DNA from: Blastocystis sp. Blastoise
Lineage: Eukaryota; Protista; Bigyra: Opalinata
Direction: 5' to 3'
Length of the DNA stretch: 64,000 nucleotides
Assembly (NCBI GenBank): GCA_039096225.1
Contig: JBBPEB010000019.1
Location: 1 to 64,000, forward strand
This document shows positions 7,719-51,838 of this stretch, one piece after another (position 1 is the stretch's first letter; every line of letters begins with the position of its first letter). The position numbers and the translations under genes were made by a program. The notes under the pieces were generated by a model. The model saw only the letters and a list, made by a program, of their open reading frames with translations, made no database searches and was not told where the DNA came from.

Positions 7719-10700
7719 ATGTTATATAAATTCTTTATTTTAGCATTCTTTCTATGTTGCACAGTCTCCAGTAAGTAACTATAAATATAAAATAAATTAA
7801 AATCTTTAGGTGAATATCAATCATCTGAAAGTGAATTATGTGTGAATGTTACAATCATTCGAAATTATGGTTCTAATGCATACAAGGAGTTCATAACTGT
7901 TTATGAAGAAAATACTACAGAAAAACAACTTCAATTTAAAATCATGTATACTTTAGGAGATCCATTAACACAAAATTTTACTACTTGTCTACCTGAAGGA
8001 CTTTACAAAATTGTTTTAATTGATTTGTATGAATTATTAAATAGAATCCATTGTTTTTTATATTGAAATTTCATTTCTTTTAATTTTTTTTTTAATTTTT
8101 TGTGATTATTTTCTTTCATTCTTTTCCTTTTTATAATTGTTATTTCTATAACTGTACAATTATTATTATTTTAATTTATTTTCTACAAATTATTTAATAC
8201 TATTTTTAAATATTATTTTAAATATCTATAAAGGTCAGAAATGGGTTGGTCTGATGGTTCTGATTTTACGTTATATATAAATAATTATTTATTATTATCA
8301 GATAGATTAGAATCCAATAATAAAAAGACTCTTCATTTCAATAGTATATTTTTATTATTATATTATTGTAGTATATTATTATGATTCTATTATGATTATA
8401 TTATTTTATATTATTATTTCCAAAAATATTCTATTACATTATAAAGTAATCCAATTATCACTATAACTATAGCATATTTCCTTATGAATCCTTCGGTTAA
8501 ATGGAAATATAAGAATGTTATATTAATGAATCAGAATTGGTTAGCTAGTAATTACGATACATCAGATTGGGCAGAATATGAATCGAATTCGTTTCCAGGA
8601 TTTGAGACATCTTTACGTTATTATCGATATGAAAATAAAGTATCATTTTCTTTAGTAGAATATCCATTTTTTATCTTTGGATTTCGTTCTCGTGAAGGTA
8701 TTGTCGTTTATTTAAATTCAAAAGAGATTTATAGAAATAACTTCGATAGTAATACTGTAATTAATCCTTTTACTTATGCCAAACGAGAAGATACTTTACA
8801 TATATATCATTATATATCCATTAAAATATCTCAATTGATTAAAGAAAATGAGAATTTTGTTTTAGGTATTGAAATTCATCCTGCATATGAACATATGCCT
8901 GTAGAAGATCATTTTGAAGCATTTATACTTCCAATATATGGAAATAAAATAGAACGATTTCTTTTATCAGAAATTCTTATAGATGATTCTTCTCATTCTA
9001 TTATTCCTCTTTCTTCTCATTCTATTAATTCATATGATTTTAAAAATTCATCATATTCATCATCACATTTGTCTTCATCTTCATCTTCATCTTCATCTTC
9101 ATCTTCATATTTATCTTCGTCTTCATCATCTTCATATTTATCTTCATCTTCATCTTCATCTTCATCTTCATCTTCATCTTCATCTTCATCTTCATCTTCT
9201 AATATATTAATTTCTCTTAAAGATCATAATAAAAATACTTATTATAATTTTAGTAATGATTATGAAAATGTTTTTCAATTCATTCTTACCAATCGTTTTG
9301 AATGGATTAATGCAATTGAAATCACTTCAGGACCTATTTCTGAACTACTTCTCAATTCTAATAATCATCAACAATACTTTTATATGCATATTTATGCTTC
9401 ATTCTCTATAAATGATCCAAAACAATTCATTCATTCTATTCTCTTAAAACCTTTTACAAGTGAAAAACAAACACAATTCTATAAATTTCTAGATCTAGAT
9501 ATAAATCAATATTATTCTGTATTTTATATTTATTTTCAAACTTCTTCAATTTCCTTACCTATTTCTTATCTCTCTTTATCTGAAATTCATTTTTTCTCTA
9601 TTGATGAATCTTCTATCTCTTCCTTTCAATATACAACTAATATACTTAATCTATTTATAAATACATATTTTTATTTTGCTCCTTATTCTTCTGGTTATAC
9701 TTCATATACTATTCTTGATAAGAATGAACTTCCTGATGGAATCCAATTCTGTCATCAAACAGGTACATTCTTTGGTATACCTACTTCAACTATTTCTATT
9801 GTTCTTGCTATTGAAGCTACTCATAGTTTATCTCAAACTACATCTACATTCATCTTACAAATCTATGTAATTGACCCTCATCCTTCTCTATATATTCCAT
9901 TAATTATAGAATATCTTAATAATAATCAACAAAATAATATTACTTCTCTACTTAATACTACCTCTATTTATAATTATTCTTTTATTAATAATAATACACA
10001 ACCTTCCCTTGATAGTAATACAACATATCTATATAATGATGTCAATTTAGATATGGTTCTATTAACTAATAATAATAATACAATTATTACTTCTTTCACA
10101 GGTACATTCTCTCCTTTTCTTCAAAAACTCTATATTCCTTACTCTCTATTCTATGTATATCTCCTTCAACTCAATAATATACCTTGGTCATCTTCATCTA
10201 TTCTCAAAATCTCTTATATAGAAAGAAATACTATATTTCCTTTACTTCAATCAAAACTCTTTATCAAACATCCTATATCTATTCCTATCTCTTTAGAATA
10301 TATTATCTATCCTCATAATGAAACTTTTCTCTGTAATATATATAACCCTTCTTTCTCTTCTAATTGGTATTCACTTGATTATATTCCAGATTCTCAATGG
10401 TTTACTTGTTATAATAATATACTTTCTACTTATCAACCAAATACTTCTTCTATACTCAATAATATTCATCTATTTCGTAAAATATTTCATATTAACGATA
10501 CACTTTCTCTGTATTCTTCTATTGAAATACATATACAAGCTCCTCCTGGTTTAATTCTATATATAAATGATCATCTTGTTTATAAATCAAACATTACTGT
10601 CGATTCTATAGTAAATACAACATATCCTCTCTCTTCTTCTATAGACTCTATTATACGTGTCATTACACTTTCAACAATCTTTATTCATCAAGGAGATAAT

Positions 10701-13700
10701 CTTCTTTCTTTTGCATATATATATCCTTCAGATCTATTTAATCATTTATCAATACAAAATACATATATGTCTCTCAAATTAAATATTCATAATGAATTCA
10801 ATAGTTTATCTTCTTCTTATTCTCTTCAAGGAAAAACAGATAAAGACTCTAGTTTATCCTCTCTTGTAGATGGAAATTATAATACTTCTTGGAAATATAC
10901 TTATATTGCTAAAGAAGAAACATCAATTCCTATAATTATATATATGGGAAATTCATTTGATTCTTATTTTGTTGATGGTTATTGTCTTGTTAAGAATTTT
11001 GATACATATAATAATGATATTATTAATTGGTCTTTCTATGGTTGTGAAGAACAAAATGAAGATGAAAATATTAATTCTTATTCTCAAGGGGATAATGATG
11101 AAAATATTCATATAGAAGAAAATACTCAAAATAATTATTTTTATGTATTCAATAATATGAATAAAAATTTAAAATGTACTCTACTAGATACAAAAAGTAA
11201 TATATATTGGACACAATCTATAGAACGTCGTTGTTTTCCAACTGTATCTCATAATTCTAGTTATCGTATATATCAATTTATCTTTGATCGTGCTTATTAT
11301 CTTGAATCTCAGAATTTTCAATCACTTAATGAAATTGAACTTCTTGTTTATAATAGAAATATTCATCTTAATATACAATATCCATCTAATACAATTCATT
11401 TTCATAAATATGAAACCGTTAAACCAATTCAACCTATTATTACAAAGAATACTCTTTATTCAAATTCATTAAATAAGATATCTTCACCATTGTATCCATC
11501 TTTTTATCTACCTTTATATTCTATTCCTTCTTCTCAAGAAAATTATTATTTTGGCTATCCATTAACAGCTACAAAAGATATAGTACTTCAATTTGCAGGT
11601 ATTTATATTGATTCAAGTAATGGATATATATATGGGCAACCTTTTACATTCACTATACCTGTTAATTATACTATTTATATACAAGATTTATTCGAAAATA
11701 AATATACATTTACATTTTTATTAACAGTATCTTCATGTAAAAATAATTATTCTTTGATATATCTTTCATTTCATACAAATAGTCTAAAGAATAAAACAAG
11801 AATGTATTATATGTTACAACGTTATAATACATCAACAAATCTTTATGATGATATACAATATTCTATAAATGTCCCACCAAATTCTATTTATAATGAAGGT
11901 ATTTGTGTTCAAGAAGGTACATATCAAATTATACTTAGTGATTCTATGCATTCTAGTTGGAATGGAAGTTTTCTTTGTATATATAATAATGATTATTCAT
12001 TAAATATTTGTGGTTTATCTACTCCTGATAATATTGTTGTTCGTTCTTCTTTCATTGTACAACATCTTTATAATGAAGATGATTATTATTGGTATAATCT
12101 TAATAATCAAAATCAATTTTCTCCTTCTAATAATTGGCAATGTACTACACCTGATATGAATATACAAAATAATATAGATACTCCTTATCATCATAATTCC
12201 TTCAAACAAGATCAGTACTTAATATCAAAAACTTATTGGACATATACAACTCCTGAATATTTAGAATATACTAAAGGAATTACACAATATTTTATACTTC
12301 CTATTACTGTAGATAATATTGATCTTTATAGTGCTCTTTCTATTACTTTTTTTTATTTAGAAGGCATTCTTCTTTATATTAATTGTCTTGAAATATATAG
12401 AGATCATTTACCTCTTCAAGATGTTACTAATAATACTTATAGTACTAATAAAGTTCCTTTCTCTTCTAGTCAATATACAACTATTTATATAGCTACACAA
12501 TATTCTGTATTTAATTTACATAATGGTACAAATTATATTGCAGTTGAGATTCATCGTTGTCGTTGGCCTTATTATGATAGTTACTTCTCTCTCTCTTATA
12601 CTCTTATTCATGATCGTAGTTATATGGTTAAAGATGGAATAGTATTATATGATCCATCGACTATTGATGTTAGTTGTCTCTATGCTTTTGATAATAATAC
12701 ACAAACATTTTGGGAAGAAGATAGTTGTTCTAATCTAATAGTTAGCTATCATTTTAAATCTAATAAATTTCAATATATTAATTCTTATAGTATTATTAGT
12801 ACAAATCATTGTAATAATCATCATCCTTCTGAAATCTTATTAGAAGGATCTACAGATAATATTCATTTTTATTCATTACATTATTCAGATTCTATTCATT
12901 TCACTTCATATTCTCAAGAACTTACTTTTGATTTCTATACTCCTTATGTATTTAATACTTATAGATTTACTATTTCTCAATGTTCTAATGATTTATTACC
13001 TGAAGATGATCCTAATGAATGTAATATTCCTGGTTTTCATATTGCAGAAATTCGTCTTTTCTCTAAGCGACTTCATGGACTATGTAAATCAGATGGATAT
13101 TGGGATGTAGCTGTTTATGGAAGTTATGGATTTCAAGATTGTGAAGGATATTTAATTGGTCATAAACGTCGTTATTGTAATGAACAAGGTGAATGGGATA
13201 ATGAAATTATAGATACTTGTCATATTGGACCACCTACTTATTTTATGTATCCACAAACTTTATATACATATTATGTAGATCAAGCAATAAAACCTCTTTA
13301 TCCTGATATAAATACATATAATCTTACATTTTATGAAGTTACTCCTCTTCCTCTTGGACTCTCTCTTGATCGTTCTACAGGAATTATATCAGGTATTCCT
13401 CTTAAAGGAGATAATGAATATACTGCAGTATTACAAGTAGTTAATGATATTGGATATTTAAATACAGTCCTTTTCTTTTCTATTATTGGTACTCAATCAA
13501 AATTATATTGTGAACCTGATTTTATATGGCCAATGACACCTATTAATACTACTGCTAGTAGACCATGTTCTGAAGGACAAATAGGTGAATTTACTAGATA
13601 TTGTGAATTTATAAATATACCTACATGGAAACCTTCTAATAATACATGTCATTATCTTCCTGATTATGTTACTGTTATCTATAAATCAATTTATTTTACT

Positions 13701-15458
13701 CTCTATGTAAATAAAAATGTGTCTATTATACCTATTACAACAGGAATTATTAATTCATGGACTATTTCTCCTTCTTCTCTTCCTCCAGGAATAACTTTCT
13801 TTGAAGGTATTTTTTCTGGTATTCCTACAAATACAACTTCAGATGTATTTTATACAGTAACTGCTATTGGTAATAATACTTATTCATTTGTATTATGTCT
13901 TTCTGTAATACAAGTATATTGTCCTATAGATGGAGAATGGCCATTAACACCAAGAGCAACTAATGTTACTCTTCCTTGTATTCCAGATTATTATGTTGGA
14001 TATCGTCAACGATTTTGTTCTGATGATACTATTCCTATTTGGAGTCCTATCTCTACTTATTGTATTCTTAAAGCACCAGAAATATCTTATTCTATAAATA
14101 CACTCACTGTATATTTCCATGATCAAATTATACCTCTTGAAGCAACATGTATTGGTTTATGTTCACTATGGACTATAACTCCTTCTCTTCCTCAAGGATT
14201 ATTCTTTAATAAAACAAATGGATATATATCAGGTACACCTATTGCTTCTAATAAAGGACTTAATTATACTATTTCGGCTTCAAATATTAATGGATCTTCT
14301 AATTGTTCTGTATATATTCATGTTATTTATATTAGTTGTCCTCAAGATGGTATCTGGCCAGAAACAGGAAAAGGATTATATATGGTATATACTTGTAAAG
14401 AAGAAAATAAAGAAGGAACATTAATGAGACATTGTTTTAATACAATGCCTCCCACATGGAGTGCAGTTACAGGTGTTTGTACTTATAAAACACCTTCTTT
14501 TCATTATAATAATCAAATTAGTTTTCATTTCTATAAGAATGTTCCTATTATTCCATTAATACCTACTACAACGGGTTATATTACTTCATGGTCTATTTAT
14601 CCTCAACCTGCAGACTCTCTAGTATTTAATACATCAACAGGTATGCTATATGGTACTCCTATTCATGCTCTTCCATTAATTCTATTCGAAATCACAGCTT
14701 CTAATCCTCATAAATCAAATAAAACAACTATATCCATAATTATTGAAAATGTATTTTGTATTGCTGAAGATGATTGGATCCTTAATAATGTTAATGATAT
14801 TCAATATAGATTTTGTAGTAATACTAATTTAGAATATCAAGAACGTCATTGTTTATTTCAAAACAATGCAGGTATATGGTCACCAGTATATAATGAACGA
14901 TGTATAGCACATACTGAAACTACAATTCCTCTTCGTGATCATTATTATATTTATTATTCGTTATCCATATATAATATCAGTCAATCTCAACTAAAACCAA
15001 AAGATCTATATGCTCTTTATAAAGTTTTTTATATCCTATTCAACTATTATAATACACCTTCTACATTATTACATATAGAGAAAATGACAGATACGATTAA
15101 TGGTACAGGATTTACTATTGAATATCTTGTGAACTGTACCTCAAATGATTATTCTCATATTCTAAATACACTTTATAAGCTATCTCCTTCTCTTCTTCAA
15201 GAATCATTATCTTATTATTCCTCCTTCTTTAATTCAGTTTCTCTTTCTTTCTCTATACAATCTATCTCAGTTATAGCTTATCATTGGATACCTACACTTC
15301 TTGATATACTTCTTCTAATCTCTTCTATACTTTTTATAAGTATACTTCTTTATTTCTTCTATAGAATCTATCAACATTATACTCGTCAAAAGAGAAATGA
15401 TCTTCGAAAAGAACGAGGCATTATTATTTATAAACAAGAACGGACACCTTTATTGTAA
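7719..15458 (+). CDS. Giant type-I surface protein (~2450 aa): signal peptide, 3x[beta-sandwich + discoidin/F5-8C-like + He_PIG Ig], 5 Cys-rich HRM-like modules alternating with He_PIG, TM, ExxxLL tail
   Basis: ATG 7719 MLYKFFILAFFLCC; introns 7771-7809, 8027-8233, 8344-8472 join to the 2324-aa ORF. Motifs: GIVVYLNSKEIYR..LGIEIH, LPxGLxxxxxTGxIxGxP repeats, CxxDGxWPxT..C..R.C..W..C repeats, TM LLLISSILFISILLYFFY, C-terminus ERTPLL. Confidence 0.85.
9055..9200 (+). repeat. (TCATCT)n hexamer encoding a poly-Ser tract inside the surface protein
   Basis: Tandem TCATCT units read in frame as long Ser runs broken by HL/YL. Confidence 0.9.
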
Positions 15459-16037
15459 TTTATTTTATTTTATTTTTTTTTTTTTTTGCTTTATTTTTTT
15501 TTATGCTTTTTTTATTTTTCTTATTAAATTTTTTTTTATTATCTATATTTTTTTATTTTTTTTTTTTAAATTATTATATATTTATATTTTTTTATATATA
15601 TTTTTTATTTTTTTTTATATTTAGTAAATTCTTTTATCTATTTATCTCCTCAAATCTTTGTTAATCCTTTGTGTTTATATTTATATATATATTTATATAT
15701 ACTTTGTTTAATATCCTTTTTTTTCCTCAATAATTTTTATGTTCATTTTGTTTTCTCTCTCTACTTTTTGATTGAGATATTCTATATATAATTATATTCA
15801 TTTTATACTATTCTTATTCTATTTCAAATATTCATCACTGAATACTGTTTTATTCATATATATATTGATTACTTATATGTTTTTTATTTATTTATTATTT
15901 TCTTTTTATAATACATTTTATGTATTATTCATAATAATAAATATTACTTCCTTAGTACTATTTTTTTTTAATATAATATATACATTTTAATTCGTTTTTA
16001 ATGTATTTTATTTTACTTTTTCTCGTCTTTCCAGTAA

Positions 16038-16081
<44 letters not shown>

Positions 16082-16876
16082 TATTCATGACTTACTCTGT
16101 TGATATATACAAATATTTAGATATATATATATAGTTGTATTATCAAGTTAAATAAGATATAATAATAGTTCCAATCCTCTCTCTTCAGAATGGACTCTCC
16201 AACTATTCATTATATTTATATACTTCCTTTCCCTTGACACAATCTAAATAATTGGTTACAATATATTATATTCATTCATTGAATATCTCACATTCTCTAT
16301 TTTTTTTTTATTTTGTTTCCTTTTATTTGTATATATTTTCTTTTCTTTTTATTTTTTAATTTTTATATTTTTGCGATTATAATGAGTTTTCTTTTTTCCA
16401 TAATATTTATGATGATAACTCTTTATAACTTTTATTTTAATTAGCTGATTTATCTATTACATATCTATTTATTCTTTTTTTATATTATTTGTTTTTAACT
16501 ATATATCATTTAGTTTTTATTATATATATATCTATTTGATATGAAGTAACCATTTCATTTACTTTATTTTTTGTTCCTTTAATTATTAATTTTTAAATTC
16601 TATAATTTCAAAGTATTTTCTATAAATACATATATGATTAATTACTAGCTTTCAGAATGTTATTTTATTGCTTGTCTATTTATATTGTTTCGTTTGTGAT
16701 GCTTAGTAACGAATTAACGTAATTTGAATCATTATAAAACACATAACTCTTTTCAATAACCATTTCTATATATTTGTTAACGTGAAAAAACATATCTACT
16801 AAATCATATAGTATTATAGATTTCTAAAATCAATAGAATGTTATTAGCTAGTCATGTTTTGAAAAATAAATATAAA

Positions 16877-16949
16877 GCCCGTCTAGCTCAGTCGGTAGAG
16901 CGCCAGGCTCTTAACCTGGTGGTCGGGGGTTCGAGCCCCCCGGTGGGCG
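16877..16949 (+). tRNA. tRNA-Lys(CTT)
   Basis: GCCCGTC/GGTGGGC acceptor, TAGCTCAGTCGGTAGAGC D arm, CCAGG-CT-CTT-AA-CCTGG anticodon arm, GGTTCGAGCC T arm, T-run downstream. Confidence 0.97.
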
Positions 16950-17506
16950 CTTCTTTTTGTTATTCAATTTGTTTTGTTTTTTTTTGAATATATTACTAGA
17001 CTCTTATTTTATATATGTTAATACTTGAATGATAATAACCAATCATAAACTATTTTTTTAATAAGATATTATTCATATATATACTGATGATAACAAAAAA
17101 AAAATTAATAAAAACAATGTTTTACACATGCATTATTTCTTTTATTCGGTCTGAACTATCAAAAAAATATATTAAAAATCCTTTTTATGACTATCTTCCT
17201 CTCTGTATTGTTTTTATGTCATGAACACTATTTTTACGTAACCCATCGAAAAGCATAAAATATAAATTATCATTTAAATGTTATTTTTAACTAATCCTAT
17301 GTTCATTCTACTCTTCTATGCATATATTGAATAATTTTTATATGTTTTCGTTACTAATACAAGAAAACAAAAGCATAAAATAGATCTACCACAAAACAAT
17401 AATTTTCCCTTGGGAATAAAAATAAAAATTCAAATGAGAGGGCAGAATTTGCCAGGGTAAATAATAAATAATTTTTGTTTGTGTAACAGATTTGTTCAAA
17501 ACTGGT

Positions 17507-21364: not shown

Positions 21365-21748
21365 GATTATAATATATATTCACTTCTGTATTCATCCAAG
21401 TTTTTATATTCGTTCTATTTCATTATTATTCTTTGAATTTCTATGTTCTAATCAATCAGACATTTATTATATATTATATTAGCAGTGTTCATAACTTTAA
21501 AATTTTTATATGTATTATAATATGTAAATATATATATATCATCAAAAAAATACATACAACAACCTTCAATTATTTACTAATTTTAATTAATTATACATCC
21601 TCAAATTGTTGAAAACTACTGTACGGATTCTCTTTTTTTATTTTTACTCCGTTTTTCATGATTAAATCACAATTTTATAAACAATAGCTAATCTTTTTCA
21701 GAACTATTCTATGTACATTTTTTTTCACATTTTTGAATCTTTTTTAAT

Positions 21749-24946: not shown

Positions 24947-25121
24947 AAATCTATTTGATTTATAATTACTCAATAATTTATTTATTTATTTCATATAATT
25001 ATTATTTATGTACTATTTTTTAATTATTATTTGGATTTGTTTCTCCTTTATTTTTTTAAACAATGAATATTTTCCCATAAAAACCAAACATAATTTTTAA
25101 AAAAGAGTCTTAACAACAAGT

Positions 25122-33339: not shown

Positions 33340-33882
33340 TTAATTAATAGTAATTTTTTTAGTTTCCATTTCAGTAGTTTTCGTCTTAGGAAGAGAAAGC
33401 TTTAAAACACCATTAGTATAATCAGCTTTAACATTTTCTACATCAACATCAGTCGGAACAGCCATACTTCTCTTATAACTACCGAAATGTCTTTCATAAT
33501 AATGATAATTCTTCTCATCATCATCTTCTTTTTTCTCACCTTTTCTTTCACAACTTAAAGTCAGCACATTATCTTTTAATTCAACATTAATATCATCTTT
33601 TTCCATTCCAGGTAAATCAGCACTTACTTCATAATTATCTTTATTCTCTTTTATATCCATACGACCAAAACCATAGAAAGGATTTATCATACCTTCATGA
33701 TCATCAAAAAGGGTTAATTCATCATGTTTTTCAGAATTCTTACCAGTCTTTGACTTCTTATTACCTTTAGACTTATCAATAGGATTCTCAATCATATGAT
33801 GTCTTAATCTCATAGGACCATAGATAGAAGGGAAGAAATCATCAAAAGGATCATTAAATAAACTATCAAATACAAATGACAT
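33340..33882 (-). CDS. Small heat-shock protein (HSP20/alpha-crystallin), intronless
   Basis: MDIKEN..ADLPGM..DINVE..ERHFGSYKRS..ADYTNGVLKLSLPK. Confidence 0.95.
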   Translation of the reverse strand: MSFVFDSLFNDPFDDFFPSIYGPMRLRHHMIENPIDKSKGNKKSKTGKNSEKHDELTLFDDHEGMINPFYGFGRMDIKENKDNYEVSADLPGMEKDDINVELKDNVLTLSCERKGEKKEDDDEKNYHYYERHFGSYKRSMAVPTDVDVENVKADYTNGVLKLSLPKTKTTEMETKKITIN

Positions 33883-34018
33883 CTTAATTATAAATTGATA
33901 ATAAGAACTTTTTATTAAAACTAAACTTTATGTTTTAAGTACAAATAATTTATGTATAATAAAAGAAACTTAAAATAACAAATCTTCTCACAAAAATATC
34001 TGTTTCATTTCTAAATTA

Positions 34019-34229
34019 TTCTAGAAATTACTGGAAGATTCTTTTTCATAAACCAATTATTCTTTTTGTTTCCATTCAATAGACGAATATCTTCTTTTTG
34101 TTCTTCATTTTGATCCTCCTTAAATAACCGTGACTTTTATTGATATAGTCGCTATCTTGTTCTAATTACCATTGTTCTCGAAACTTCTAGCTTTTTTTCT
34201 TTATTTTTCCTAAAAATTCCAGAACTGTC
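34019..34229. promoter_or_regulatory. Heat-shock elements in a bidirectional sHSP promoter
   Basis: TTCtaGAAatTACtgGAAgaTTC (34019-34041), perfect TTCtcGAAacTTC (34175-34187), TTCctAAAaaTTCcaGAA (34207-34224). Confidence 0.8.
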
Positions 34230-34331
34230 TTTGTTTATTATTTGTTTCTTATTATTGACAAAATTAATTTTAAATTATTAATTTTTTATTAAAAGTTAAT
34301 TAGCGCTTTATATTATAAAATTTCTATTAAA

Positions 34332-35375
34332 ATGAATTCTTTCTTTAATGATTATGATGATCTTTTCTTTAATGCCTATAATAATCATAGACACTTTGAT
34401 GATTTCTTCTGTCCTTCCTATTTTCTAAAGAGTATTATTCCTTATGAAGATGAAGAAAGTGCTAATAATATCGCAAATACGAAATCAAAGCATGTATCAA
34501 AAACAATTCCAATTTCGGGAAGTAAAAAAATAGATATAAATCAAGAAAAGGCGGATGGTAAAGAAAATAAGCCTACTGATACTAAAGTTGAAGATAATCA
34601 ATCTAATGAAAATAAGTCTGAAAATAAGCCTATTAATACTAAAGTTGAAGATAATCAATCTATGGATACTAAAGTTGAAGATAATAAGCATACTGATACT
34701 AAAGTTGAAGATAATCAATCTATGGATACTAAAGTTGAAGATAATAAGCATACTGATACTAAAGTTGAAGATAATCAATCTAGTGAAAATAAGCCTATGG
34801 ATACTAAAGTTGAAGATAGTAAACCTATGGATACTAAAGTTGAAGATACTAAGCCTACTGATACTAAGCCTATTGAACAAAAGAAAGAAGAAAAAAGTCA
34901 AGAAGATGGTGAACAACAAAAGAACCTTAAAGGAGATCAAAAAGTGAATAATGTCAAACATACAAAGAAATCAAGTAAGAGACATAATAATTCATTATTA
35001 ACTAAGAATATTTCAGATAATTATATGATGATAAATCCATTTTCTGGTTTTGGACGATTAGATATTAAGGAATCTAAAAAGAATTATATTGTTACCATAG
35101 ATTTACCTGGTGTTTGTAAAGAAGATATTGATGTAGATTGTGAAGATAAAGTATTAACTATTCAATGTCAACGTGATGATCATACTATTGACAATAATGA
35201 TATGGATTATCGCTATGTAGAAAGATCCTTTGGTTCCTTCAAACGAAATATTCAACTTCCTGATGATGTTAACGAAGATTCAATCATTGCAGAATTAAAT
35301 AATGGTATTTTACATATAATTATTGCTAAATCTGATCCTAAAGAAAAGCAAATGAAGAAAATTAGTGTTAATTAA
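34332..35375 (+). CDS. Small heat-shock protein with inserted repeat linker, intronless
   Basis: C-terminal HSP20 domain (LDIKES..IDLPGV..ERSFGSFKR..NNGILHIIIAK); shares MINPFxGFGRxDIKE with its neighbour. Confidence 0.93.
   Translation: MNSFFNDYDDLFFNAYNNHRHFDDFFCPSYFLKSIIPYEDEESANNIANTKSKHVSKTIPISGSKKIDINQEKADGKENKPTDTKVEDNQSNENKSENKPINTKVEDNQSMDTKVEDNKHTDTKVEDNQSMDTKVEDNKHTDTKVEDNQSSENKPMDTKVEDSKPMDTKVEDTKPTDTKPIEQKKEEKSQEDGEQQKNLKGDQKVNNVKHTKKSSKRHNNSLLTKNISDNYMMINPFSGFGRLDIKESKKNYIVTIDLPGVCKEDIDVDCEDKVLTIQCQRDDHTIDNNDMDYRYVERSFGSFKRNIQLPDDVNEDSIIAELNNGILHIIIAKSDPKEKQMKKISVN
34570..34872 (+). repeat. Coding 30-bp minisatellite (DTKVEDNQSM / DTKVEDNKHT)
   Basis: ACTAAAGTTGAAGAT core repeated eight times in frame. 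Confidence 0.9.
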
Positions 35376-41000: not shown

Positions 41001-41279
41001 GGATTAACAGAAACTTATAAAAATAAACAAAGAATAATCGAAAATCAGTAAAAATATATATATTTAAAACATATTTATACGCCATTTAAATGACGTATAA
41101 ATGACATAATAATTATAGAATTAATTTAAAACATAATAGAATAAAATACCTTCTTCAACATCGGAAACATCAGAAACTACGTCTTCAACATCAGAGATAT
41201 CAGAGACATCAGAAATACTGATATCAGACATAGTGTCGCTTATATCAGAAACATCAGAAACATCACTTATATCAGACAT
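38073..41279 (-). CDS. Sorting nexin with PX + BAR domains (SNX-BAR/Vps5-like), acidic low-complexity termini
   Basis: PX motifs YTTYKV, VRRRFSEFDQL, RYPGLLIEPMPPKK, helical BAR-like region; ATG 41279 preceded by a likely 5'UTR intron (41294-41361, GTAAGT...TTTTAG); ends SDDMDL-TAA. Confidence 0.85.
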
Positions 41280-42730
41280 TTTGGTGAACTTTGCTAAAAA
41301 GAAAAGATAATAGAATACATAGATATTACTATGATTTAATTGAATATAAAAATAAACTTACGGAATTAATAATAGTTAATAGAATATAAGTATAATCAAT
41401 TCTAATAGAGAATCAAAATCTCATATAAATAAAAATGCCAATTGAAATAACGTTTCAATATTCGGATGTGACATTACAAACAATAATTTCATTTTTATTG
41501 GATTATCGTTCGAAGATATCCAATAGAATCACTATAATCTATCGATAGGTTGACATCATCCAATTCTTTTTCATCTCATTTAAGAACAAAGTTGCAAAAA
41601 ACATATTTATGAAAGACATATATCCTATAATAGTATCATTTATCATTTAGTAATCATAGTATATATGTCGAATTTAATAATGATTCAATCCAATTATTTA
41701 TAAAGAATGTTTACATATTGGGGATTATTGATTCTTCTTTAGGTTTCTCAACAACAAATAGTCCTCTTTTTATTCAACTTTAAAACTTTTGAAAAATAAG
41801 CTTTGATCATTTATTATCGAAATCTAAAAACGTTTCTATATATTTATTTTCTTTTTATTTACCATCTAGCTTTATGTGTAATGAATCTAAAAATATTTAA
41901 TAACATATAATGCTAGAAATAATGTCAATAGAATATTTTTATTTGAGTATTTACGATAAAAACTTTTTTGTTCATTCAGAAAGCATATTTATATGATATT
42001 TATTATATACAGCCTGTTTAGTTGGATGGAGAATATTTTTTGATAACACATTTTATTTTTAAAAACGCTTTATAATGTTATCGGCAATTGTTTATAAGAA
42101 ACTAGAATCATTTACGAAAAGATATACGATATATAAAAAGCAATTCCAATCAATCCCACTTATGATGAAAGAGAAGTCTCTTAAAAAGTAGCTCATCAGT
42201 TTATTAACTACAATTTAAATACAAAAATAATTTTATTATGAATATAATATTAAATAAAATAAAATAATTATGAAAGTCAGCTAAAAAGTTTAGTTCTTAT
42301 TATAATTTTTATTTCATTTTCCTATTATTTTTTTTTTTATTATTATTTTCTCTTATTTTTTTCTTTTAACACATACATATTATATGTATACTTGTTTACT
42401 TACTTTCTAAATGATCAAATTATAAAATAACAATAAACAATTGAGTCAAAATGATTTCATTCCAACTTTATTCATTAAGTATATCAATGATTCAATGTAA
42501 AATCTATCCAATATCTCACGTGTCAGAAAAAGCTGTGATAAAAACAATAATATTGTTTGTACAATAAATTTATTATGATTTGTTCAACTTATTACACTAT
42601 AAATTTAGATTTTCTATAACATATAATATTCTTTCATAAATATGGATTAGTATAGTTTACAATAATTATAGAAAAATCAATTAGGTTAGTTATATACTTA
42701 TAAAATAAATTAGAATTTTTTTTATCAGAT

Positions 42731-42802
42731 GGCACTATGGTGTAATGGTTAGCACGTTGGACTTTGAATCCAGCGATCCGAGTTCAAATCTCGGTAGAGC
42801 CT
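42731..42802 (+). tRNA. tRNA-Gln(TTG)
   Basis: GGCACTA/TAGAGCC acceptor (one A-A mismatch), TGGTGTAATGGTTAGCAC, TTGGA-CT-TTG-AA-TCCAG, CCGAGTTCAAATCTCGG. Confidence 0.95.
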
Positions 42803-43206
42803 CATTTTTCTTTTTAAAAGTGTTTTTTTTAAAATTATTAGAGCAGTCATATTTAATGATAAACATTTTTTTTTTAAGTGAAATATATAGTTTTTATAAG
42901 AAGTTCATTAATAAATTTAAAAATAAAATACTAAAATCTATGAAATAGAAAGAAGAAAATTAAAAATGATTTGAAATTGATTTAAAAGCAATAAATAAGA
43001 ATAAAAACATAAGAATAAAAACTACAAGAAAAGAAACACAGCTATAATTAAAACATAAAATGATTATTTAAAATCAGAAAAAAGGAAACTCTTTTCACTA
43101 TAAGAAAAATAGAGAAAAAAAAAGCATTTAGAGAGGAAAAATAATAAAAGAAAGAAAAAAAATAAAATATGTATATGATTTCAAAAAAGAAAGTATAATA
43201 AATAAT

Positions 43207-45204
43207 TTATAACCCATAGACTTCGATTTCATCTACAATAAAATCGACATATTTCTGATTATTTTCATCAAGGAGGACTTCTCCTCCTGTAAATATCTTT
43301 AATGGGACTTCGTCATCCGGGATTTTAATGAGTTCTGTTTGATTTCCATTGAGACATAAATCATTGAATGCAAAAGATCCTTCTCCATTAAATCCAATAT
43401 AATTATTATTAGGTTTAGTCATATCTATACCTAAGAGAAGATCATTATGAGAAGTATTACCATAGATAGGACCCGTTAATTGTTTATAGATAATATTATG
43501 TTGTTTAGGCTTTGATACAAATCGAGTAGGAGGGATCTCATAGGGGTTCTGTAACGTAAAGAGGAATGCTTGCGAATCATAGGCATCTTTGTCTATATAC
43601 AGAATGAATAGAATCAAATAGAAGTATAAAAGATATATATATATTAAAAGAAAAAAAATAGTATATATTTTATTATAATAAGATAATAAAAAAAAATATA
43701 TTTTATTATAATAAGATAATAAAAAATATAGATATTTTATGATAAGATAATTAAAAAAAAATATTTTATTATAATAAGATAATAAAATATATATATACAT
43801 TTTTTACTCCAAGGAATACTAGAATACCCACCAAATAAACAAGTATGCTTATCATTCTTCGCTTTTATAAATAATACGGTTTCACCATGATTATCACAAC
43901 ACTCATGAAAAGCATGCGCAGTATATCCATCTCTTGACCCTCTATAATAATAAATTATATTATTAAATAATAAAATAATTATAAATAATAAAATAATAAA
44001 ATAAAATAAAATAACAATAAATAATAAAATAATAAATAATAATATTAATAATAATAAAATAATAATAATAATAATAATAAAATAAAATAATAATAAAAAA
44101 ATAATAAAATAAAATAATAATAAAATAATAAATAATAATATTAATAAAATAATAAATAATAATAAAAAATAAATAAAATAATAAATAAAAAAAATACCTA
44201 TATAATAATTTAAACATTTTATTATTTCCAATCCAATTAGAGAATTCATAAGTTAGTTTTGTATTCATAAGTTTAGAATCAGGGAATATATAATTTAATA
44301 ATTTATAATGTCTCCATATATCAGTCTTATTAATATTAAAGTAAATAAATTCTTTTTCAATATTTTCCAATGCATCTATATCTTCTACAGGTATAATAAG
44401 TTCACCTGTTTGTATATACTGTTCAACATAATGAAAGTATTTAATATTATCTACAAATTGAAAAGCATGATTCACACTATCATAAGTAACACGATTATCT
44501 AGCTTACAGTTAAACATAGAATTATATATATTCAAAGAACGTAAATCTGAACGGCGAATAACATATAATTCATTATTAATATTAAATCGAATATCATTCT
44601 GAGTCCAATCGTACATCATCTTCTTAGTAACTATTTCAGAATGACGTTCTTTCATTTCAACATTACAAGGAATACCTAACTGACTTAAGGAATCTAATAT
44701 ATCTTCAAAAAGATCATCATTAAATTGATCAATATTCATTGGATGGCCTTGTATATAATCTAATATATATGGAAATAAAACTTCAGATTGATCTACATAT
44801 AAATATCCACCAACACGACGAGTTTCTGGATTCTGATACATTTCATATAAATTACTTTCAGGGTATGAACGAAGAATAGAAGTAGGTAAAGGATAATGCA
44901 TATTACCTTCTTTACAAACAAAAGTAACAAATCCAGGATTTACATCATACTGAACATCATCTTTCTCATGTATTAAAACCTCAGGTAAATCAGGAAACGA
45001 AGAAGGTGATTCCGTCTTTTGCTCAAGGTAATGCATTGTTTGAGATAAAAAATCATATACCTTATCGATAGCAGTCGATATAGTAACCATATTATGATAG
45101 AATTCATTGGTTTGCTCTGTTAACACATGCTTAATTTTTGTAATCTGACTAAATATATGTTGCTGATCACTTATATTGTTTCTTGGAACTGCCAGAGATA
45201 TCAT
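43207..45204 (-). CDS. BTB/POZ(KCTD-like) x2 + TLDc domain protein, 3 exons
   Basis: ILRSYPESNL..LYVDQS..FPYILDYI (T1-type BTB); second degenerate BTB; TLDc LLYR|GSRDG..FHECCD..FGGYSSIPW..AFLFTL..GPIYG..DEIEVY. Confidence 0.85.
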
Positions 45205-45783
45205 TTTGATATTTCCTTTAGTATTGTATTAATAACAAAATACAATAGAAAAAAACAAATTTAAATAAGTTCTATGGTTTTTTCTTTTTCTCCTCTTGTA
45301 TTATTGTTGATTAATTTATAATTCTGAGCGTAATATTTTATTTTCCCATAAAAAAATAATATTTTTTTATTTATCCTATCAACGTCTCTAGTATTTCTTT
45401 CTTATTGGATAAAACACAAGTGACAAAAAATAATCAAATTGTTTTCTTTCTTCTTTCAATGGTGTTATTGTTTTGAATGCGTCATTAAATTCCACAATAT
45501 ATAAGCTCATTATTATCATGCAAAAACTCTTTTGAATCAGTAAATTCTCCTATGCTTGTTTTACACTGATCATTTTACTATGAATTTACTATTTAAATCT
45601 ATGTTTCTATATTTTTTCTAATTCATTAATTGTACTCTCTTTCTTATAAAATAAGTTTGAATTCATAGTATTTATAAACTATGTTTTACATTTAAAAAAA
45701 TACTAACGAAATAATAAATTTATTTCTTTTTAAGAGAAAAAGAAATCAAAGAGAAAAACAATCAAAATAAGAAAAGAAAAAGT

Positions 45784-45856
45784 TGGAGAAGAGGGGCATC
45801 GATCCCCTTACCTCTCGCATGCTAAGCGAGCGCTCTACCATCTGAGCTACATCCCC
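45784..45856 (-). tRNA. tRNA-Ala(AGC)
   Basis: GGGGATGTAGCTCAGATGGTAGAGCG CTCGC-TT-AGC-AT-GCGAG ... CTTCTCCA; G3:U70 Ala identity pair. Confidence 0.96.
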
Positions 45857-46966
45857 ATTTCTGAAATTTTTTCTATAATTATCCTGATATATAGCATCTA
45901 CTATTGGATACCCACAATGTCTCTCATCATCGTTATTTGCTTCTTCTCTTTTATTCATTTAGATTCGTTTATATATATTAGAAACTATGTAATTGTCACG
46001 ATACTATAAAGGCTATTAAAATGAATGAGACTATTTTTATTAAAAACTATTTTCCAATTAGTCACCATTTCTATTAAAACCAAAACTTGACTTTATAAAA
46101 TTAGCGCATAGACAAAAGCAACCTTCTAATTATGAAATCATCTATTATTCTTGTTTGCCAGTAAATATATTTTTATAGACTTAAAACTTCTCTTAAACAC
46201 AAAAACAGTTTATTCATAATAATATATATGTTATATAAGAATCAATTTTAGTTGAATTTCTTTTCAGACTATGATCCCTATATCTTTTAAAATAGTCTAC
46301 ACGACTTAAATAACTTATATATCGTGTTTAACACTTTTATTCGATAAAAAAACGACTGACCTTTTCTACAATTTAAAGAGTTGTTCTGATATAGATCATA
46401 ATATGAATGAAATATTACCATTCGTTTTTAATACCTTTATATCCATGCCTTTATGAAATACTAAAAATATTTTTTTTTATTTATAAGATCTTTCAGGAAA
46501 TATACGGAAACATTTTTCTGTTTTATTATTTTTCCGAAGCAAGGTTCTGCCGTGTTTCTTTATATCTAAATATTCTTGAGTAATTGTATTAAGATTTCAT
46601 GTGTTTCGAAAACAAAAATGATTCTAACGTGACTTGTCGCAAAAAGCAACCATTCAAAATAGGTCATGGGCCCAAAAATAGTGAAATGCTTCTCGGACAT
46701 TCTAAAAATTTGATAAATAAATGGTTGACATTTCTTGTTTCTTATTGGATTATTTTTATCAAATAGTCAATCACATCAAGTATGCCGTGATTATCCAATA
46801 ATCTTTATCTTATCATGCTGACTTTATATGACCAAAAACAAATGGCTTCGATTTATCATACGTTTTGAATTCTTAATCAATGGCTAAAAGAAAAGCCCAT
46901 TGACATTATAAGATCTTTTTCAAAAGACTCTTTATTATTTATTTATTACTATTCGACTCTGGAAAG

Positions 46967-49900
46967 ATGAAGACACTCTTTATCTACTTATTCATTGTTG
47001 CTGTAATTGCTCAAACATGTACTTCTCCTAAAGTTTCTATCAATATGAGAAGAACTTATAAGAATGATGCTAATCAAGAAACTGTTCAAATTTGGCAAGG
47101 AAACTATAAAACGGGTACTCTTATTGCTGAATACAATGGACTTGGTATGGGTAACACTGTACAAACATATTCTCTTTGTTTGGCTCCTAGTCAACATACA
47201 CTTGTTGCTCTTGATAGTGCTAAGAACGGTTGGACTGATGGATCCAGATTTGATCTTGTTACTAGAGCTGGTGTCACTATTCTTTATGGTACACTTGATC
47301 GTTTCCAAAAAAAGGAATTTGTTTTCTATCCTGCTTTCTCGGTTAAATCTACTGATTCCTGGAAATATATAAACACTGCTCAAACAGGTAATCAATGGAC
47401 TCAAGCTTCTTTTTCTGATGCTGCTTGGATTGCTTATTCTCCTAGTAAATTCCCTGTTGTTTCTACTGTTACTAGATATTTCCGTACTCAAGTTGATTTA
47501 CCTTCTAATAAAAACTCTTTTGCTATTGGTGAGATCGGTGCCTTTACTAAAGATGGTGTTGTAATCTATGTTAACGGACAAGAAATTTATCGTCGTAATG
47601 TGCCTACTGGTGCTGCTGCTACTACTCCTGCTACAGCTATTGATACTGAAGCTTCTTACAAGAGAATCACTTTCCCTACAAGTGCTACTTATTTAACTGG
47701 CTCAAAAGTTACTCTTGCTATTGAAATACATGGTTCTAGTACTCCTAGTAGTGTTGCTGAAGATTTTATTGGCTATCTTATCTTTATATATGGTCCTTGT
47801 GCTGCTCGTCTCACAGATTATACAGCTACTGCTGAAAGAAATCCTGAAGATCCAAATGAACCTATTGATAAAATATTTGATGGTGATATTCAAACTAAAT
47901 GGTATGCTAATCCTCTTCCTATTTGGGGTCAAGTTCAATTCAATAATGGTAGAAGAGAATGGATTAATAGATATTCTGTTTCTGTTGGTAATTATGATGT
48001 TAACCGTAGACCTATTTCTTGGAAACTTCTTGCTTCTAATGATGGTAATACTTTTGTTGTTCTTGATTCCAAAAATTTTGTTACTTGGGATGGATTTAGA
48101 ACTACTCGTAATTTTGAATTAAATACTAATAAAGAAGCTTATAATATCTATAGAATTCAAATCTTAGCTACTAAAGGTACTGATATGGAATTAACTGAAC
48201 TTGAATTATCTGCTTGTACTAATGCTATTCTTACTCCTACTCTCTCTTATGGTACTACTTCTCTTAATTTAGTTACTAACTTAGATGAAAAAGTATTATA
48301 TCCTACTCAAAATGGTTTTGAAAACTTTGTTATTACTCCTGCTGTTCCTGCTGATTCTGGTTTAACATTTGATGCTGTTAGTGGTTCATTCAAAATATAT
48401 CCTACTGCAGTTATTGCTCTAACATCATTCTCTATCAGTGCTAGACATTATTCTAATCAACAAACATCTACTGTAACTATTTCCATTTCTGCTTCTGAAT
48501 GTGTTGCTCCTAAAGTTCGTTTTGATATTAAACAAGCAAATGGTAATGATAATACTAATGGTGAACCTGAAACTGTTACTATAATAAGTCCTAATAATGT
48601 TGAACTTGCTTCTAGTTCTCTCTCTGCTTCTGATATTGGCACTAATGAAAGAACAATCAAACTCTGCCAAGATCCTGGTGTATATACTGTTAAGATGACT
48701 GCTGCTTCTCTTGTTGGTTGGGCTTATAGTTCCTATGTTCAAATCAATTTATTTACTTATGATGGTAGCTCCTTTACTGCTTCTAGAGGTAAATTAATTG
48801 ATCAAATATCTGATTCCTTCAAAGTTAATATTAAATATGAATTACCTACTTCTACTAAAGTTCTTCTTAATGCTGCTTCTATTCCTGCTGGATGGAAAGA
48901 AACATCTTATGCTGGTGAATCTACTTGGGTTACTTATACTAAAACTCCTGCTATGCAATCAACTACTAAATATGCTCTTTTCAGATCAACTTTTACTATT
49001 TCTTCTTTAACAGGTATTCAAGGTTTTGAATTCCTTTATAGAGCTAATGATGCTGTAGCTGTATATGTTGATGGAAAACTCATCACTAAATATTGGATTA
49101 CTCCTAAAGGTGATGATTATACTGCAACTCCTAGTTCTGAAGGTCACCAAGATAAGGTTGAATGGAGAGGTGTTACTGGAGTCTTATCTGATCTTGCTGT
49201 AGGTACTCATGTTATTGCTGTTTTACTTGTTGATGGAAAGAATCCTTATGTTGCTAGAAATGTTGATTATGACTGTATGATTCGTCTTCTCTCTGACTCA
49301 AATACTGTCTCAAGAACATTTGATGCTAATTCTAGTGAATCTAATAAGGTTTGGGATGGTGCAAATGTTCTTTTCGATGGTTCGTATAAAACTAGATTTG
49401 CTGCATATATTGATAGTACTCATCCTGCTCCTCAATGGGCCTCTGGTAACTTTAAACAATGGAGATTTGAAGCTATTAATAAGTATTGTATTGTTGCTAA
49501 TTATGATGCTCCTAAACATGATCCCAAGAAATTCTCTCTTTTAGGTTCTATGGGAGGTTGGGATGCTGCTGATTATACTCTTTTAGATACTCAAGAGAAT
49601 GTTTCTTTTGATAGAAGATCTCAAAGACTTTGCTTCTATATCCCTTCTAATACTAAAGCTTATAATATTTATAGAATTAGATTTGAAGAAGTCAATGTTC
49701 CTTTCCCTGAAAATGATAAAGTAATTCTTGCTGAATTAGAATTATTTTTAATTGATTACAATAAAATTACTATCAGTCCTTTGTCTTATCAAAGTAGTTC
49801 TATTACTGGTTATTCTAATTCTCAAATCACTACTAATTTCCCTACTAGTGAATATTATCGTAACTATCAAATTACTCCTGCTCTTCCTACTGGATTAAAA

Positions 49901-51838
49901 TTATCTAGTTCAGGTACTATCTATGGTACTCCTATTGCTCCTTCTTCTTCTACTTATCAAATCAGTGCTGTTTCTATTATGGGTACGGCTGCTTCTACTT
50001 CTGTTTCTATTAATATCCAAACTTGTACTGCTCCTAATGTATACTTCAGACTTTCATTTACTAATATGGAAAGTGATTCTGAACAAAATGGATTCTCTCT
50101 TAAGGATGCTGCTGGTACTGTAATAGATTCTGTTGAAACATTCCCCAATTATATTGGTAGTTATGCTCGTGGTTATTGTAAACCAGCTGGTGTATATATT
50201 CTTGTTCTTACTGATACTTATAGAGATGGTTGGGGTAATGGTAAAGTAACTGCTTATGCTGAAGATAATACTGAAATTACTTCTTCTGGATTACTTAAAG
50301 GTGAATCTCCTAAAACTATTTATATTAATGTTGGATTTATTGTTAAATTTGGTCAAACTCAATGGAAATATACATCTACTGCTCCTTCTGCTGATTGGAA
50401 TTCTATTACTTTCGTTGATAGTACTTGGCAAACTGCTGTTGGTGGTTCATTTGTTGGAGTTTCTGGTAAAACACAATTCTATAGAACTTCTTTTACTATT
50501 AATGATCTTAGTTTATTCTCTCTCTATGAAATAACTTTTAATATTAAGGCTGGTATTATTGCATATATTAATGGTAAAGAAGTATATAGATATAATTTAG
50601 GTAGTGGTGTTATTACTCCTTCTACTAGTGCTACTGCTGAATTTGCTGAACCTACGAAAATTACTGTCTCAGAATCTTCTGCTTTTGGTAAACTTGTTAC
50701 TGGTAATAATGTTCTTGCTGTAGAAATCCATAATTTTGGTCCTACCGCTGAAACTACTTTTGATGCTCAACTTATGCTTTATCTTTCTGGTTCTAATAGA
50801 ATATTTGATGGTACTGTCTATGCTAGTGTCAAGGGATTAAAGGATAATACTTATGATGAAAGTGAACAAAAAGCTTTTGATGGAAATCTTAATACAAAAT
50901 ATTATGGTCCTGGATGTAATAAACAATATTATTTAGAATATACTTATAACTATAATCGTAAGGAATATGCTACTGCTATTGCTTTATCTCGTGGTACTAA
51001 TAATGGTCGTTTACCTTCTTCTTTTGCTCTTTCTGCTTCTAATGATGGTGTTAATTATAAGAATCTTGTCTCTTATTATAATCTTACTTTTGGTAATCAT
51101 GGATCTGCTGAGGGTACTCGTACATTTAATTTCTTTAATAAAGATTCTTATAATAAATATAGAGTTTCTCTTGATTCTCGTGTATGTGTTGAAGGATTAG
51201 AAATTGGTGAAATTGCTCTTATGTCTAATAAGATTGAGAGTTATTGTAAAGCTGAAGGTCAATATATTGATACTATCAGTGGACAATCTAGTTATAGACC
51301 TTGTGAAAACTATTATTATGGTGCTTATAGTAAATTATGTACTGGAGGTGTTTGGGGTCCTGAAGTAAGAAGTTGTGAAGTTGTTGCTCCTCGTGCTTTC
51401 AATTATACTGCTAAATCTTATGTTTTCAAAACTAAGAGAGATAATGTTACTCCTGCTCCTTATTATGAAGCTGCTGAACCTGTTTTCAATATTACTCCTG
51501 ATCTTCCTGCTGGATTAACTATTAATAGAAGTACTGGTATTATTAGTGGTAAACCTCAAAATGATTTTGCTGAAACTGATTTTGTAATTATTTTATATAA
51601 TGCGAAGGGTAAAAAGTCTTTTACTATTACTCTTAGTTCTATTCCTGCTGGTGGCTTAGAAGGTTGGAGTATTGCTGTTATTGTTATTGCCTGTATTGTT
51701 ATTGTTATCTTCATTGGGTTCATTGTTTTCGTTGTTATGAACAGACGTAAAGGTAAGAAAGGATCTCATAAAGTTATGAAGGCTGGTACCAAGGCTACAA
51801 CTCCTGCTAAACCTGCTGATAAAAAAGTTAGAATATAA
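46967..51838 (+). CDS. Type-I surface protein (1623 aa, single exon): signal peptide, 3x[beta-sandwich + discoidin/F5-8C-like], He_PIG Ig domains, one HRM-like module, TM, basic tail
   Basis: MKTLFIYLFIVAVIA; DGVVIYVNGQEIYR..LAIEIH; FDGDIQTKWY..RPISWKLLASNDG; LPAGLTINRSTGIISGKP; TM WSIAVIVIACIVIVIFIGFIVFVVM; strong T-ending codon bias. Confidence 0.92.
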   Translation: MKTLFIYLFIVAVIAQTCTSPKVSINMRRTYKNDANQETVQIWQGNYKTGTLIAEYNGLGMGNTVQTYSLCLAPSQHTLVALDSAKNGWTDGSRFDLVTRAGVTILYGTLDRFQKKEFVFYPAFSVKSTDSWKYINTAQTGNQWTQASFSDAAWIAYSPSKFPVVSTVTRYFRTQVDLPSNKNSFAIGEIGAFTKDGVVIYVNGQEIYRRNVPTGAAATTPATAIDTEASYKRITFPTSATYLTGSKVTLAIEIHGSSTPSSVAEDFIGYLIFIYGPCAARLTDYTATAERNPEDPNEPIDKIFDGDIQTKWYANPLPIWGQVQFNNGRREWINRYSVSVGNYDVNRRPISWKLLASNDGNTFVVLDSKNFVTWDGFRTTRNFELNTNKEAYNIYRIQILATKGTDMELTELELSACTNAILTPTLSYGTTSLNLVTNLDEKVLYPTQNGFENFVITPAVPADSGLTFDAVSGSFKIYPTAVIALTSFSISARHYSNQQTSTVTISISASECVAPKVRFDIKQANGNDNTNGEPETVTIISPNNVELASSSLSASDIGTNERTIKLCQDPGVYTVKMTAASLVGWAYSSYVQINLFTYDGSSFTASRGKLIDQISDSFKVNIKYELPTSTKVLLNAASIPAGWKETSYAGESTWVTYTKTPAMQSTTKYALFRSTFTISSLTGIQGFEFLYRANDAVAVYVDGKLITKYWITPKGDDYTATPSSEGHQDKVEWRGVTGVLSDLAVGTHVIAVLLVDGKNPYVARNVDYDCMIRLLSDSNTVSRTFDANSSESNKVWDGANVLFDGSYKTRFAAYIDSTHPAPQWASGNFKQWRFEAINKYCIVANYDAPKHDPKKFSLLGSMGGWDAADYTLLDTQENVSFDRRSQRLCFYIPSNTKAYNIYRIRFEEVNVPFPENDKVILAELELFLIDYNKITISPLSYQSSSITGYSNSQITTNFPTSEYYRNYQITPALPTGLKLSSSGTIYGTPIAPSSSTYQISAVSIMGTAASTSVSINIQTCTAPNVYFRLSFTNMESDSEQNGFSLKDAAGTVIDSVETFPNYIGSYARGYCKPAGVYILVLTDTYRDGWGNGKVTAYAEDNTEITSSGLLKGESPKTIYINVGFIVKFGQTQWKYTSTAPSADWNSITFVDSTWQTAVGGSFVGVSGKTQFYRTSFTINDLSLFSLYEITFNIKAGIIAYINGKEVYRYNLGSGVITPSTSATAEFAEPTKITVSESSAFGKLVTGNNVLAVEIHNFGPTAETTFDAQLMLYLSGSNRIFDGTVYASVKGLKDNTYDESEQKAFDGNLNTKYYGPGCNKQYYLEYTYNYNRKEYATAIALSRGTNNGRLPSSFALSASNDGVNYKNLVSYYNLTFGNHGSAEGTRTFNFFNKDSYNKYRVSLDSRVCVEGLEIGEIALMSNKIESYCKAEGQYIDTISGQSSYRPCENYYYGAYSKLCTGGVWGPEVRSCEVVAPRAFNYTAKSYVFKTKRDNVTPAPYYEAAEPVFNITPDLPAGLTINRSTGIISGKPQNDFAETDFVIILYNAKGKKSFTITLSSIPAGGLEGWSIAVIVIACIVIVIFIGFIVFVVMNRRKGKKGSHKVMKAGTKATTPAKPADKKVRI

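Follow-up and report, generated by a model that had tools for sequence, protein, structure and literature searches.

Blastocystis is the commonest eukaryote of the human gut, and hardly any proteins are known of its adhesive coat, which has been described as fibrillar, cytoadherent and associated with bacteria (PMC6115916). The nearest described genes are those of Denoeud 2011 (PMC3129679), a set of 26 He_PIG (IPR008009) membrane genes of ST7 that were proposed as horizontally acquired adhesin candidates; they had cadherin-like matches, some carried galactose-binding-like domains and one an F5/8C domain, and the tables of that paper do not contain IPR001879 (HRM). Single parts have counterparts in other systems. 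The CBM32 of the GH92 mannosidase NnGH92 (7NSN) holds a mannose analogue through E105, F122, D148 and R152 and had little effect on mannan binding in assays (PMC10167667). Dystroglycan and protocadherin-15 MAD12 run from cadherin-like Ig repeats through a ferredoxin-like juxtamembrane domain to one transmembrane (TM) helix, the same order as in the longer proteins described below, and staphylococcal SraP likewise carries its lectin on cadherin-like domains. A 2025 eLife survey, the search of which did not include stramenopiles, found HRM outside Holozoa only in Fonticula (PMC12716839).

Genes A and B lie in a 64-kb window (the whole stretch of DNA that was analysed) of the 33.3-Mb, 34-contig assembly of Blastocystis sp. 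Blastoise, a tortoise Blastocystis, and fit the 2011 description of a Blastocystis membrane protein with He_PIG and optional galactose-binding or F5-8 domains. The ST7 IPR008009 genes, compared by description, are very likely the same family. In correction of an earlier note on the window, the family is not unreported: Denoeud 2011 had already flagged its He_PIG/galactose-binding genes. That account contains no architecture, HRM, SEA-like domain, stalk variation or mosaicism, whereas at least 142 loci are recorded here. Searched in their main texts, Gentekaki 2017 and the current Lind preprint yielded no description of the family; a previous version of that preprint is indexed with a few mentions of 'surface coat' and 'immunoglobulin'. 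Modular grammar, family size, shuffling and the use of HRM appear to be undescribed in the literature searched. An Ig-domain expansion may be mentioned in comparative work on Blastocystis and Proteromonas.

The window has 21-33% GC and holds eukaryotic genes interrupted by introns. The main open reading frame of gene A (8484-15458) encodes 2324 aa, and a start at 7719 requires three GT..AG introns (7771-7809, 8027-8233 and 8344-8472). These introns were inferred from GT..AG borders, frame and homology, with the exons scanned singly and their lengths summed; the frame is kept throughout and the sum is 2454 aa, while exon 2 and exon 3 each match a part of the N-domain profile, one part directly after the other (6-62 and 65-103). 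Proteins A and B align with an E value of 3e-47 at 22% identity. Local module profiles define a common grammar, signal peptide, (N-S-D-I)x2, N-S-D, (H-I)n, TM, tail, in which N and S are beta domains, D is the CBM32-type domain, I is He_PIG and H is an HRM-like Cys module; gene B reads N-S-D-I, N-S-D-I, N-S-D, H, I, TM. Profiles, together with a putative signal peptide and one TM helix in each protein, confirmed the two type-I proteins with triplicated heads that the earlier note had read from the sequence, as well as its stalks of five Cys modules against one, alternating with He_PIG (5 H and 4 I in A, 1 and 1 in B). Its module identities, CBM32/F5-8C, He_PIG and HRM-like, were likewise supported by profile matches; Pfam returned He_PIG four times in A, and He_PIG twice plus F5/8C in B. 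Judged by its sequence, gene A is a degenerate copy, with a Ser-rich insert in D1 and an N2 without D..G or Cys; it carries 40 N-glycosylation sequons, and its stalk units are 137-142 aa long and 25-31% alike. The features are as follows.

7719..15458, + strand: gene A, 4 inferred exons, 2454 aa, type-I membrane protein, diverged paralogue
7719-7770, 7810-8026, 8234-8343 and 8473-15458, + strand: inferred exons of gene A (GT..AG, frame, homology)
7719..8343, + strand: A putative signal peptide and N1 (C..C, D..GW), intron-split (hydrophobic N-terminus; N profile)
8487..9875, + strand: A head unit 1, with S1 at 8487-8939, D1 with Ser-rich insert at ~8940-9602 and He_PIG at 9615-9875
9876..11735, + strand: A head unit 2, with degenerate N2, S2 at 10317-10778, D2 at 10797-11351 and a weak He_PIG
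11736..13067, + strand: A head unit 3, with N3 (read by eye), S3 at 12147-12611 and D3/CBM32 at 12621-13067
13077..14906, + strand: A stalk, five 4-Cys HRM-like modules (13077, 13503, 13914, 14331, 14751) with four He_PIG between them
14910..15281, + strand: A juxtamembrane SEA/MAD-like domain, beta-alpha-beta-beta-alpha-beta, no autocleavage motif
15294..15455, + strand: A single TM helix and 35-aa tail ending ERTPLL, with an acidic dileucine-type sorting motif at 15438-15455
46967..51838, + strand: gene B, single intronless ORF, 1623 aa, type-I membrane protein
47018..48493, + strand: B head unit 1, with N from 47018, S from 47345, D/CBM32 from 47804 and He_PIG from 48233
48500..50023, + strand: B head unit 2, with N from 48500, S from 48839, D from 49310 and He_PIG from 49769
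50024..51229, + strand: B head unit 3, with N from 50024, S from 50348 and D/CBM32 from 50795
51239..51646, + strand: B stalk, HRM-like module at 51239-51379 (first Trp missing) and He_PIG at 51386-51646
51677..51835, + strand: B single TM helix and 34-aa basic tail ending KVRI

Two AlphaFold models were confident (pLDDT 92.8 and 93.0). The best PDB relative of D, by sequence and by structure, is the CBM32 of 7NSN (E 2e-23; Z 19, rmsd 1.8), and comparison with several other CBM32 domains gave Z 17. Residues of the Ca site are kept in most of the 88 D domains (Asp in 85, Thr/Ser in 84 and Glu/Asp in 79), while equivalents of the sugar residues E, D and R are all present in 27/88, E and R in 42/88, and none in 20/88. 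Their retention differs by position: the E105 and R152 equivalents are each kept in 19/23 unit-1 D domains, unit 3 keeps them in 16/23 and 17/23, respectively, and unit 2 has instead the D148 equivalent together with His or Tyr. On this profile and model evidence, D is a CBM32 domain whose Ca2+ site is usually kept and whose sugar residues are often kept. It resembles the CBM32/F5-8C of Firmicute glycosidases such as NnGH92 in fold, in the Ca site and often in the E/D/R sugar residues; unlike the NnGH92 module, it is not joined to a catalytic domain, and the Blastocystis head presents it three times, in diverged form, at the end of a eukaryotic membrane stalk. D domains clustered by position in a quick tree that included one bacterial protein and cannot show a donor, with units 2 and 3 recovered at SH-aLRT 97 and 96; as each of these two units comes out as a single group, the triple head is old.

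The S sandwich gave weak PDB profile matches to the CBM67 of SaRha78A (3W5M) and a Pleurotus lectin (6KBJ) (E 0.045-0.36), BetaGal_ABD2 was matched in 11/38, and significant relatives occur in bacterial CotH/LTD proteins. S is a CBM67-like sandwich and differs from CBM67 and the CotH/LTD sandwich by the loss of Asp-Asp, which persists in 3/118 Blastocystis S domains, as against DD or ND in 23/23 scored bacterial relatives. A canonical Ca-dependent lectin was consequently rejected for S, the Asp-Asp Ca/sugar motif having gone in 115/118 copies, and only D retains a recognisable sugar site. The N domain is modelled as all-beta with one likely disulfide, matches no Pfam family and had Atlas matches that were all under 0.9; its PDB matches to nanobodies were set aside as a probable chance YC..WG similarity. 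The bacterial type that had been claimed for the head domains is supported, D and S having bacterial relatives, and a bacterial origin of these domains is plausible from the sequences. The bacterial matches found carry S, D or I singly.

The reading we prefer, with a probability of roughly 55%, is that A and B are variable multivalent glycan-binding adhesins, predicted to lie at the surface in the cell coat. Because each head has three CBM32 domains with pockets that differ by position, one molecule would probably grip several sugar types by avidity. Mucin, bacteria and plant fibre are candidate ligands, and the N and S sandwiches probably act as scaffold. Behind the head, the HRM-like and He_PIG modules would be strung like beads into a spacer stabilised by disulfides, whose length determines how far the head reaches through the coat, at an estimated ~7 nm per stalk unit from typical domain sizes. 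The same stalk modules also carry other domains of glycan-binding type (PA14, LamG and WSC). Points against this reading are the Asp-Asp motif lost from S, the minority of D domains that retain all three sugar residues and the 20 that retain none, the small effect of the 7NSN CBM32 itself on mannan binding, and the degenerate, possibly weakly expressed gene A.

He_PIG was recognised at E 1e-24 in A and 2e-10 in B and has a cadherin-like fold, with Z 11 to domains of BF4189 and SraP. Across 30 H modules, C3, C22, C35, C50 and W43 are invariant and W9 is kept in at least 90%; the Cys/Trp pattern described in the earlier note holds for gene A, whereas the first module, which is the only one in B, is without the first Trp in most members. 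Neither window protein, taken whole, reached the Pfam HRM cut-off, but the profile matched 20 of the 30 family modules (Sushi matched 1) and gave ~120 genomic matches over cut-off, with the paralogue P0005 at 31.8 bits against a cut-off of 26.2. In the PDB, the H profile retrieved the HormR domains of adhesion GPCRs first (BAI3, ADGRL3 and ADGRB2; E ~1e-3), then class B1 ectodomains (ECDs), then sushi domains. The 4-Cys/2-Trp pattern, W-P-x-T and R-x-C are shared with HormR (BAI3 4DLO, ADGRL3, ADGRB2) and class B1 ECDs; H differs from adhesion-GPCR HormR in having no leading helix, GAIN or 7TM and in serving as a repeated spacer that alternates with Ig domains. In the AlphaFold model, H modules reach pLDDT 92-97 and show two small beta hairpins without a helix (DSSP), the hit lists of fold searches being taken up by the neighbouring Ig domain, so that the class B1 hallmarks of an N-terminal helix and six Cys are replaced by no helix and four Cys. 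These best matches to Pfam HRM and aGPCR HormR are what a receptor sensing peptides or hormones, in effect a GPCR ectodomain without its 7TM, would lead one to expect, yet such a receptor is very improbable here: helix and six-Cys pattern are lacking, a stalk holds up to 21 copies, and behind the membrane there is no catalytic domain but, in most members, a tail of just 19-44 aa. The GPCR reading was also rejected on the single TM helix per protein, as the earlier note had said of the missing 7TM, and on the genome, where a search run without a positive control found no match to 7tm_2 or GPS. The H module, by sequence, is HRM-like and is used as a spacer.

Members with more than one H usually end in one last H and a juxtamembrane domain before the TM helix. 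In gene A this domain of ~115 aa, which the earlier note had missed, has a beta-alpha-beta-beta-alpha-beta order in the model (DSSP), and the top Foldseek match is PCDH15 EC9-MAD12, with VIA rows spanning 55-315. Pfam SEA gave no match, and a clear G-S-[VI]-V-V autocleavage motif was seen in 1/45 juxtamembrane domains, for which reason SEA autoproteolysis was rejected. Long-stalk members are modelled to bear a SEA-like juxtamembrane domain that earlier Blastocystis reports do not contain; the likeness to dystroglycan, protocadherin-15 and SraP is one of analogy only, the family being without the SEA autocleavage motif. The tails that follow may bear on function. Gene A ends in a [DE]xxxL[LI] motif, and 21/28 tails end hydrophobic-x-hydrophobic (V-[KR]-[VI] in B and most paralogues), features that, together with the bacteria seen on the coat (PMC6115916), would suit receptors for the capture or uptake of bacteria or polysaccharide particles in the manner of mannose-receptor-type lectins. 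We regard such a role as quite unlikely, as most tails, that of B included, have no Tyr or dileucine motif. In coat adhesins, the tails being short and non-catalytic, trafficking would probably be set by the C-terminal motifs, which are ERTPLL for A and V-[KR]-[VI] for the majority of the family. The P0032 and P0033 subfamily, common in metagenomes, has ~115-aa charged tails with Tyr-acidic and Lys-rich repeats.

A profile of the D-H junction, which occurs once per typical gene, counted at least 142 full-length loci in the genome, a lower bound from 150 scored candidates of 962, with the list saturated; a few of the 142 could, however, represent the other haplotype of a counted locus or a further junction within one giant gene. 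This bears out the expanded family that the earlier note had suspected, and at least 142 genes correspond to roughly 2% of a Blastocystis genome, for which Lind et al. (PMC10690189) gave totals of 6,154-8,547 genes. The architecture was found in ST1 and in many ENA/Logan metagenome contigs, one of them with the downstream motif of human-type Blastocystis. For the N-S-D head combined with the H-I stalk, the named matches are all Blastocystis and most matches are without names; gene B paralogues carry the name Blastocystis sp. Blastoise. As far as these sequences go, the family is genus-wide across Blastocystis, not lineage-specific as had been proposed. Stalks range from 1 to 21 H modules, and the longest (contig C13) holds an 840-bp repeat that is 100% identical and is either recent or partly an effect of polishing. 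The adjustable stalk of the earlier note can be retained for paralogues over evolutionary time; no sign of adjustment within a cell was found.

Evidence for exchange between genes comes from paralogue P0005, which is ~90% identical to P0002 and P0003 of the B subfamily up to residue ~1425 and from there 74-100% identical to P0028, the head of which is only ~30-40% identical to that of P0005. The same head/stalk mosaic recurs at other loci (P0026 and L007), and by these comparisons heads and stalks are exchanged between genes by recombination. The perfectly identical 840-bp and 2004-bp repeats could come from polishing, which is the one point in favour of an assembly or annotation artefact or of bacterial contamination; an origin of that kind is scarcely credible and already largely refuted by the eukaryotic neighbours, the introns, the mosaics at several loci and the same architecture in ST1 and many independent metagenome contigs. 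At the level of sequence, tandem duplication alters the number of stalk units and crossovers in the first HRM module shift heads onto other stalks; for the adhesins that we prefer, this shuffling may yield new pairs of specificity and length. With its defined grammar and its head-stalk shuffling, the family offers concrete candidates, testable one domain at a time, for what lies behind host range, the binding of bacteria and immune variation.

Expression data were compatible with unequal use of the two genes. Words of gene B were present at 0.91 in a probable RNA run and at 0.47 in a polyA gut metatranscriptome, and the 5' 5.9 kb of gene A was represented in those RNA runs by only one 159-nt piece, with no RNA contig over the stretch that holds the introns. 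There are thus hints, from contigs that cannot show levels or absence, that A and B are unequally expressed, and gene A may be weakly expressed. Unequal RNA coverage, at least 142 dispersed loci with mosaic recombination, patchy identity among close paralogues, many degenerate sugar pockets and the heavy N-glycosylation predicted from sequons in A-type copies would all agree with a variable coat or shield, a thick protease-resistant layer under antigenic variation in which the sugar pockets are largely relics. We consider this unlikely, for the CBM32 pocket residues are kept by position across distant Blastocystis lineages and no sign of mutually exclusive expression was seen; a shielding function is, moreover, compatible with the role as adhesins rather than excluding it.

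The earlier note had matched the Cys/Trp pattern of the module to the HRM domain of secretin and adhesion GPCRs. In a large search, the H profile retrieved 993 clusters with E values up to 0.001; about half of the top matches carry N, S, D or I, and the remainder include further Blastocystis H arrays, a chytrid protein, eukaryotic receptor kinases with HRM/sushi arrays and bacterial sushi arrays. Tandem arrays of the module are present in the chytrid as well as in other eukaryotes, with a gradual passage into sushi repeats, and an origin of the module from GPCRs is not supported. Because HRM arrays occur in the chytrid and in other microbial eukaryotes, the family is not a GPCR chimera, and a transfer of HRM from a GPCR to Blastocystis is unsupported. 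Most simply, the sequences suggest, H is an old sushi-related repeat and not a piece of a GPCR. Fonticula alba HRM proteins (PMC12716839), the chytrid arrays and environmental receptor kinases have HRM-like modules outside GPCRs too, in transmembrane proteins or in arrays, and the examples examined differ from the Blastocystis family in having neither the N-S-D head nor the alternation with He_PIG. For GPCR evolution, ~120 HRM matches over cut-off in one stramenopile, plus chytrid arrays, are of interest. A wider proposal, possible yet doubtful, is that Blastocystis owes most of its surface variability to this family. Between 140 and several hundred combinations of lectin head and stalk would then form a library that recombines, of which subsets are expressed and which would set the host glycans or gut bacteria that a strain binds. 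On the same proposal, the HRM-like spacer would show that the hormone-binding domain of animal class B GPCRs goes back to an old stalk module, related to sushi, in microbial eukaryotes.

Several HRM-bearing proteins outside the typical grammar were noted. The chytrid protein is from Gaertneriomyces semiglobifer (P0145; KAI8999380.1), P0108 (L031) is a 20-copy HRM array with an E value of 1e-144, and P0142, P0173 and P0199 (L033, L034) are receptor kinases from eukaryotes of high GC content, in which HRM/sushi-like arrays are combined with fn3 and a kinase domain of TKL/Tyr type. In the Blastocystis genome, HRM-only arrays, the largest with 16 modules or more, occur at L018-L022 (C22:506-520 kb, C24:322-332 kb, C13:982-992 kb and C33:1215-1225 kb), and some hold about one module per short open frame, which suggests one module per exon. 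Two giant open reading frames with H/I stalks, 7,594 and 8,813 aa long, lie at C18:34000-64000 and C33:566000-602000 (L011-L017); the giant protein on C18 has PA14, LamG, WSC and FAMeT-like domains, and the frame on C33 contains a 2004-bp unit whose repeats are 100% identical. The stalk is also found with other heads, as in P0120, in which He_PIG is combined with PA14, P0132, P0134 and P0138, which have similar spacing, and P0159, with four N domains in a row.

Elsewhere in the window, a Band 7/SPFH-like exon under the Pfam cut-off lies upstream of gene A (4987-5592, - strand). A head-to-head pair of small heat-shock genes occupies 33340-35375, with HSP20 in both and an internal low-complexity repeat in the second. 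Two similar BTB_2-type proteins are encoded at 43207-45204 and 55496-56545 (- strand), and exons resembling a TLDc domain come after the gene at 43207-45204.
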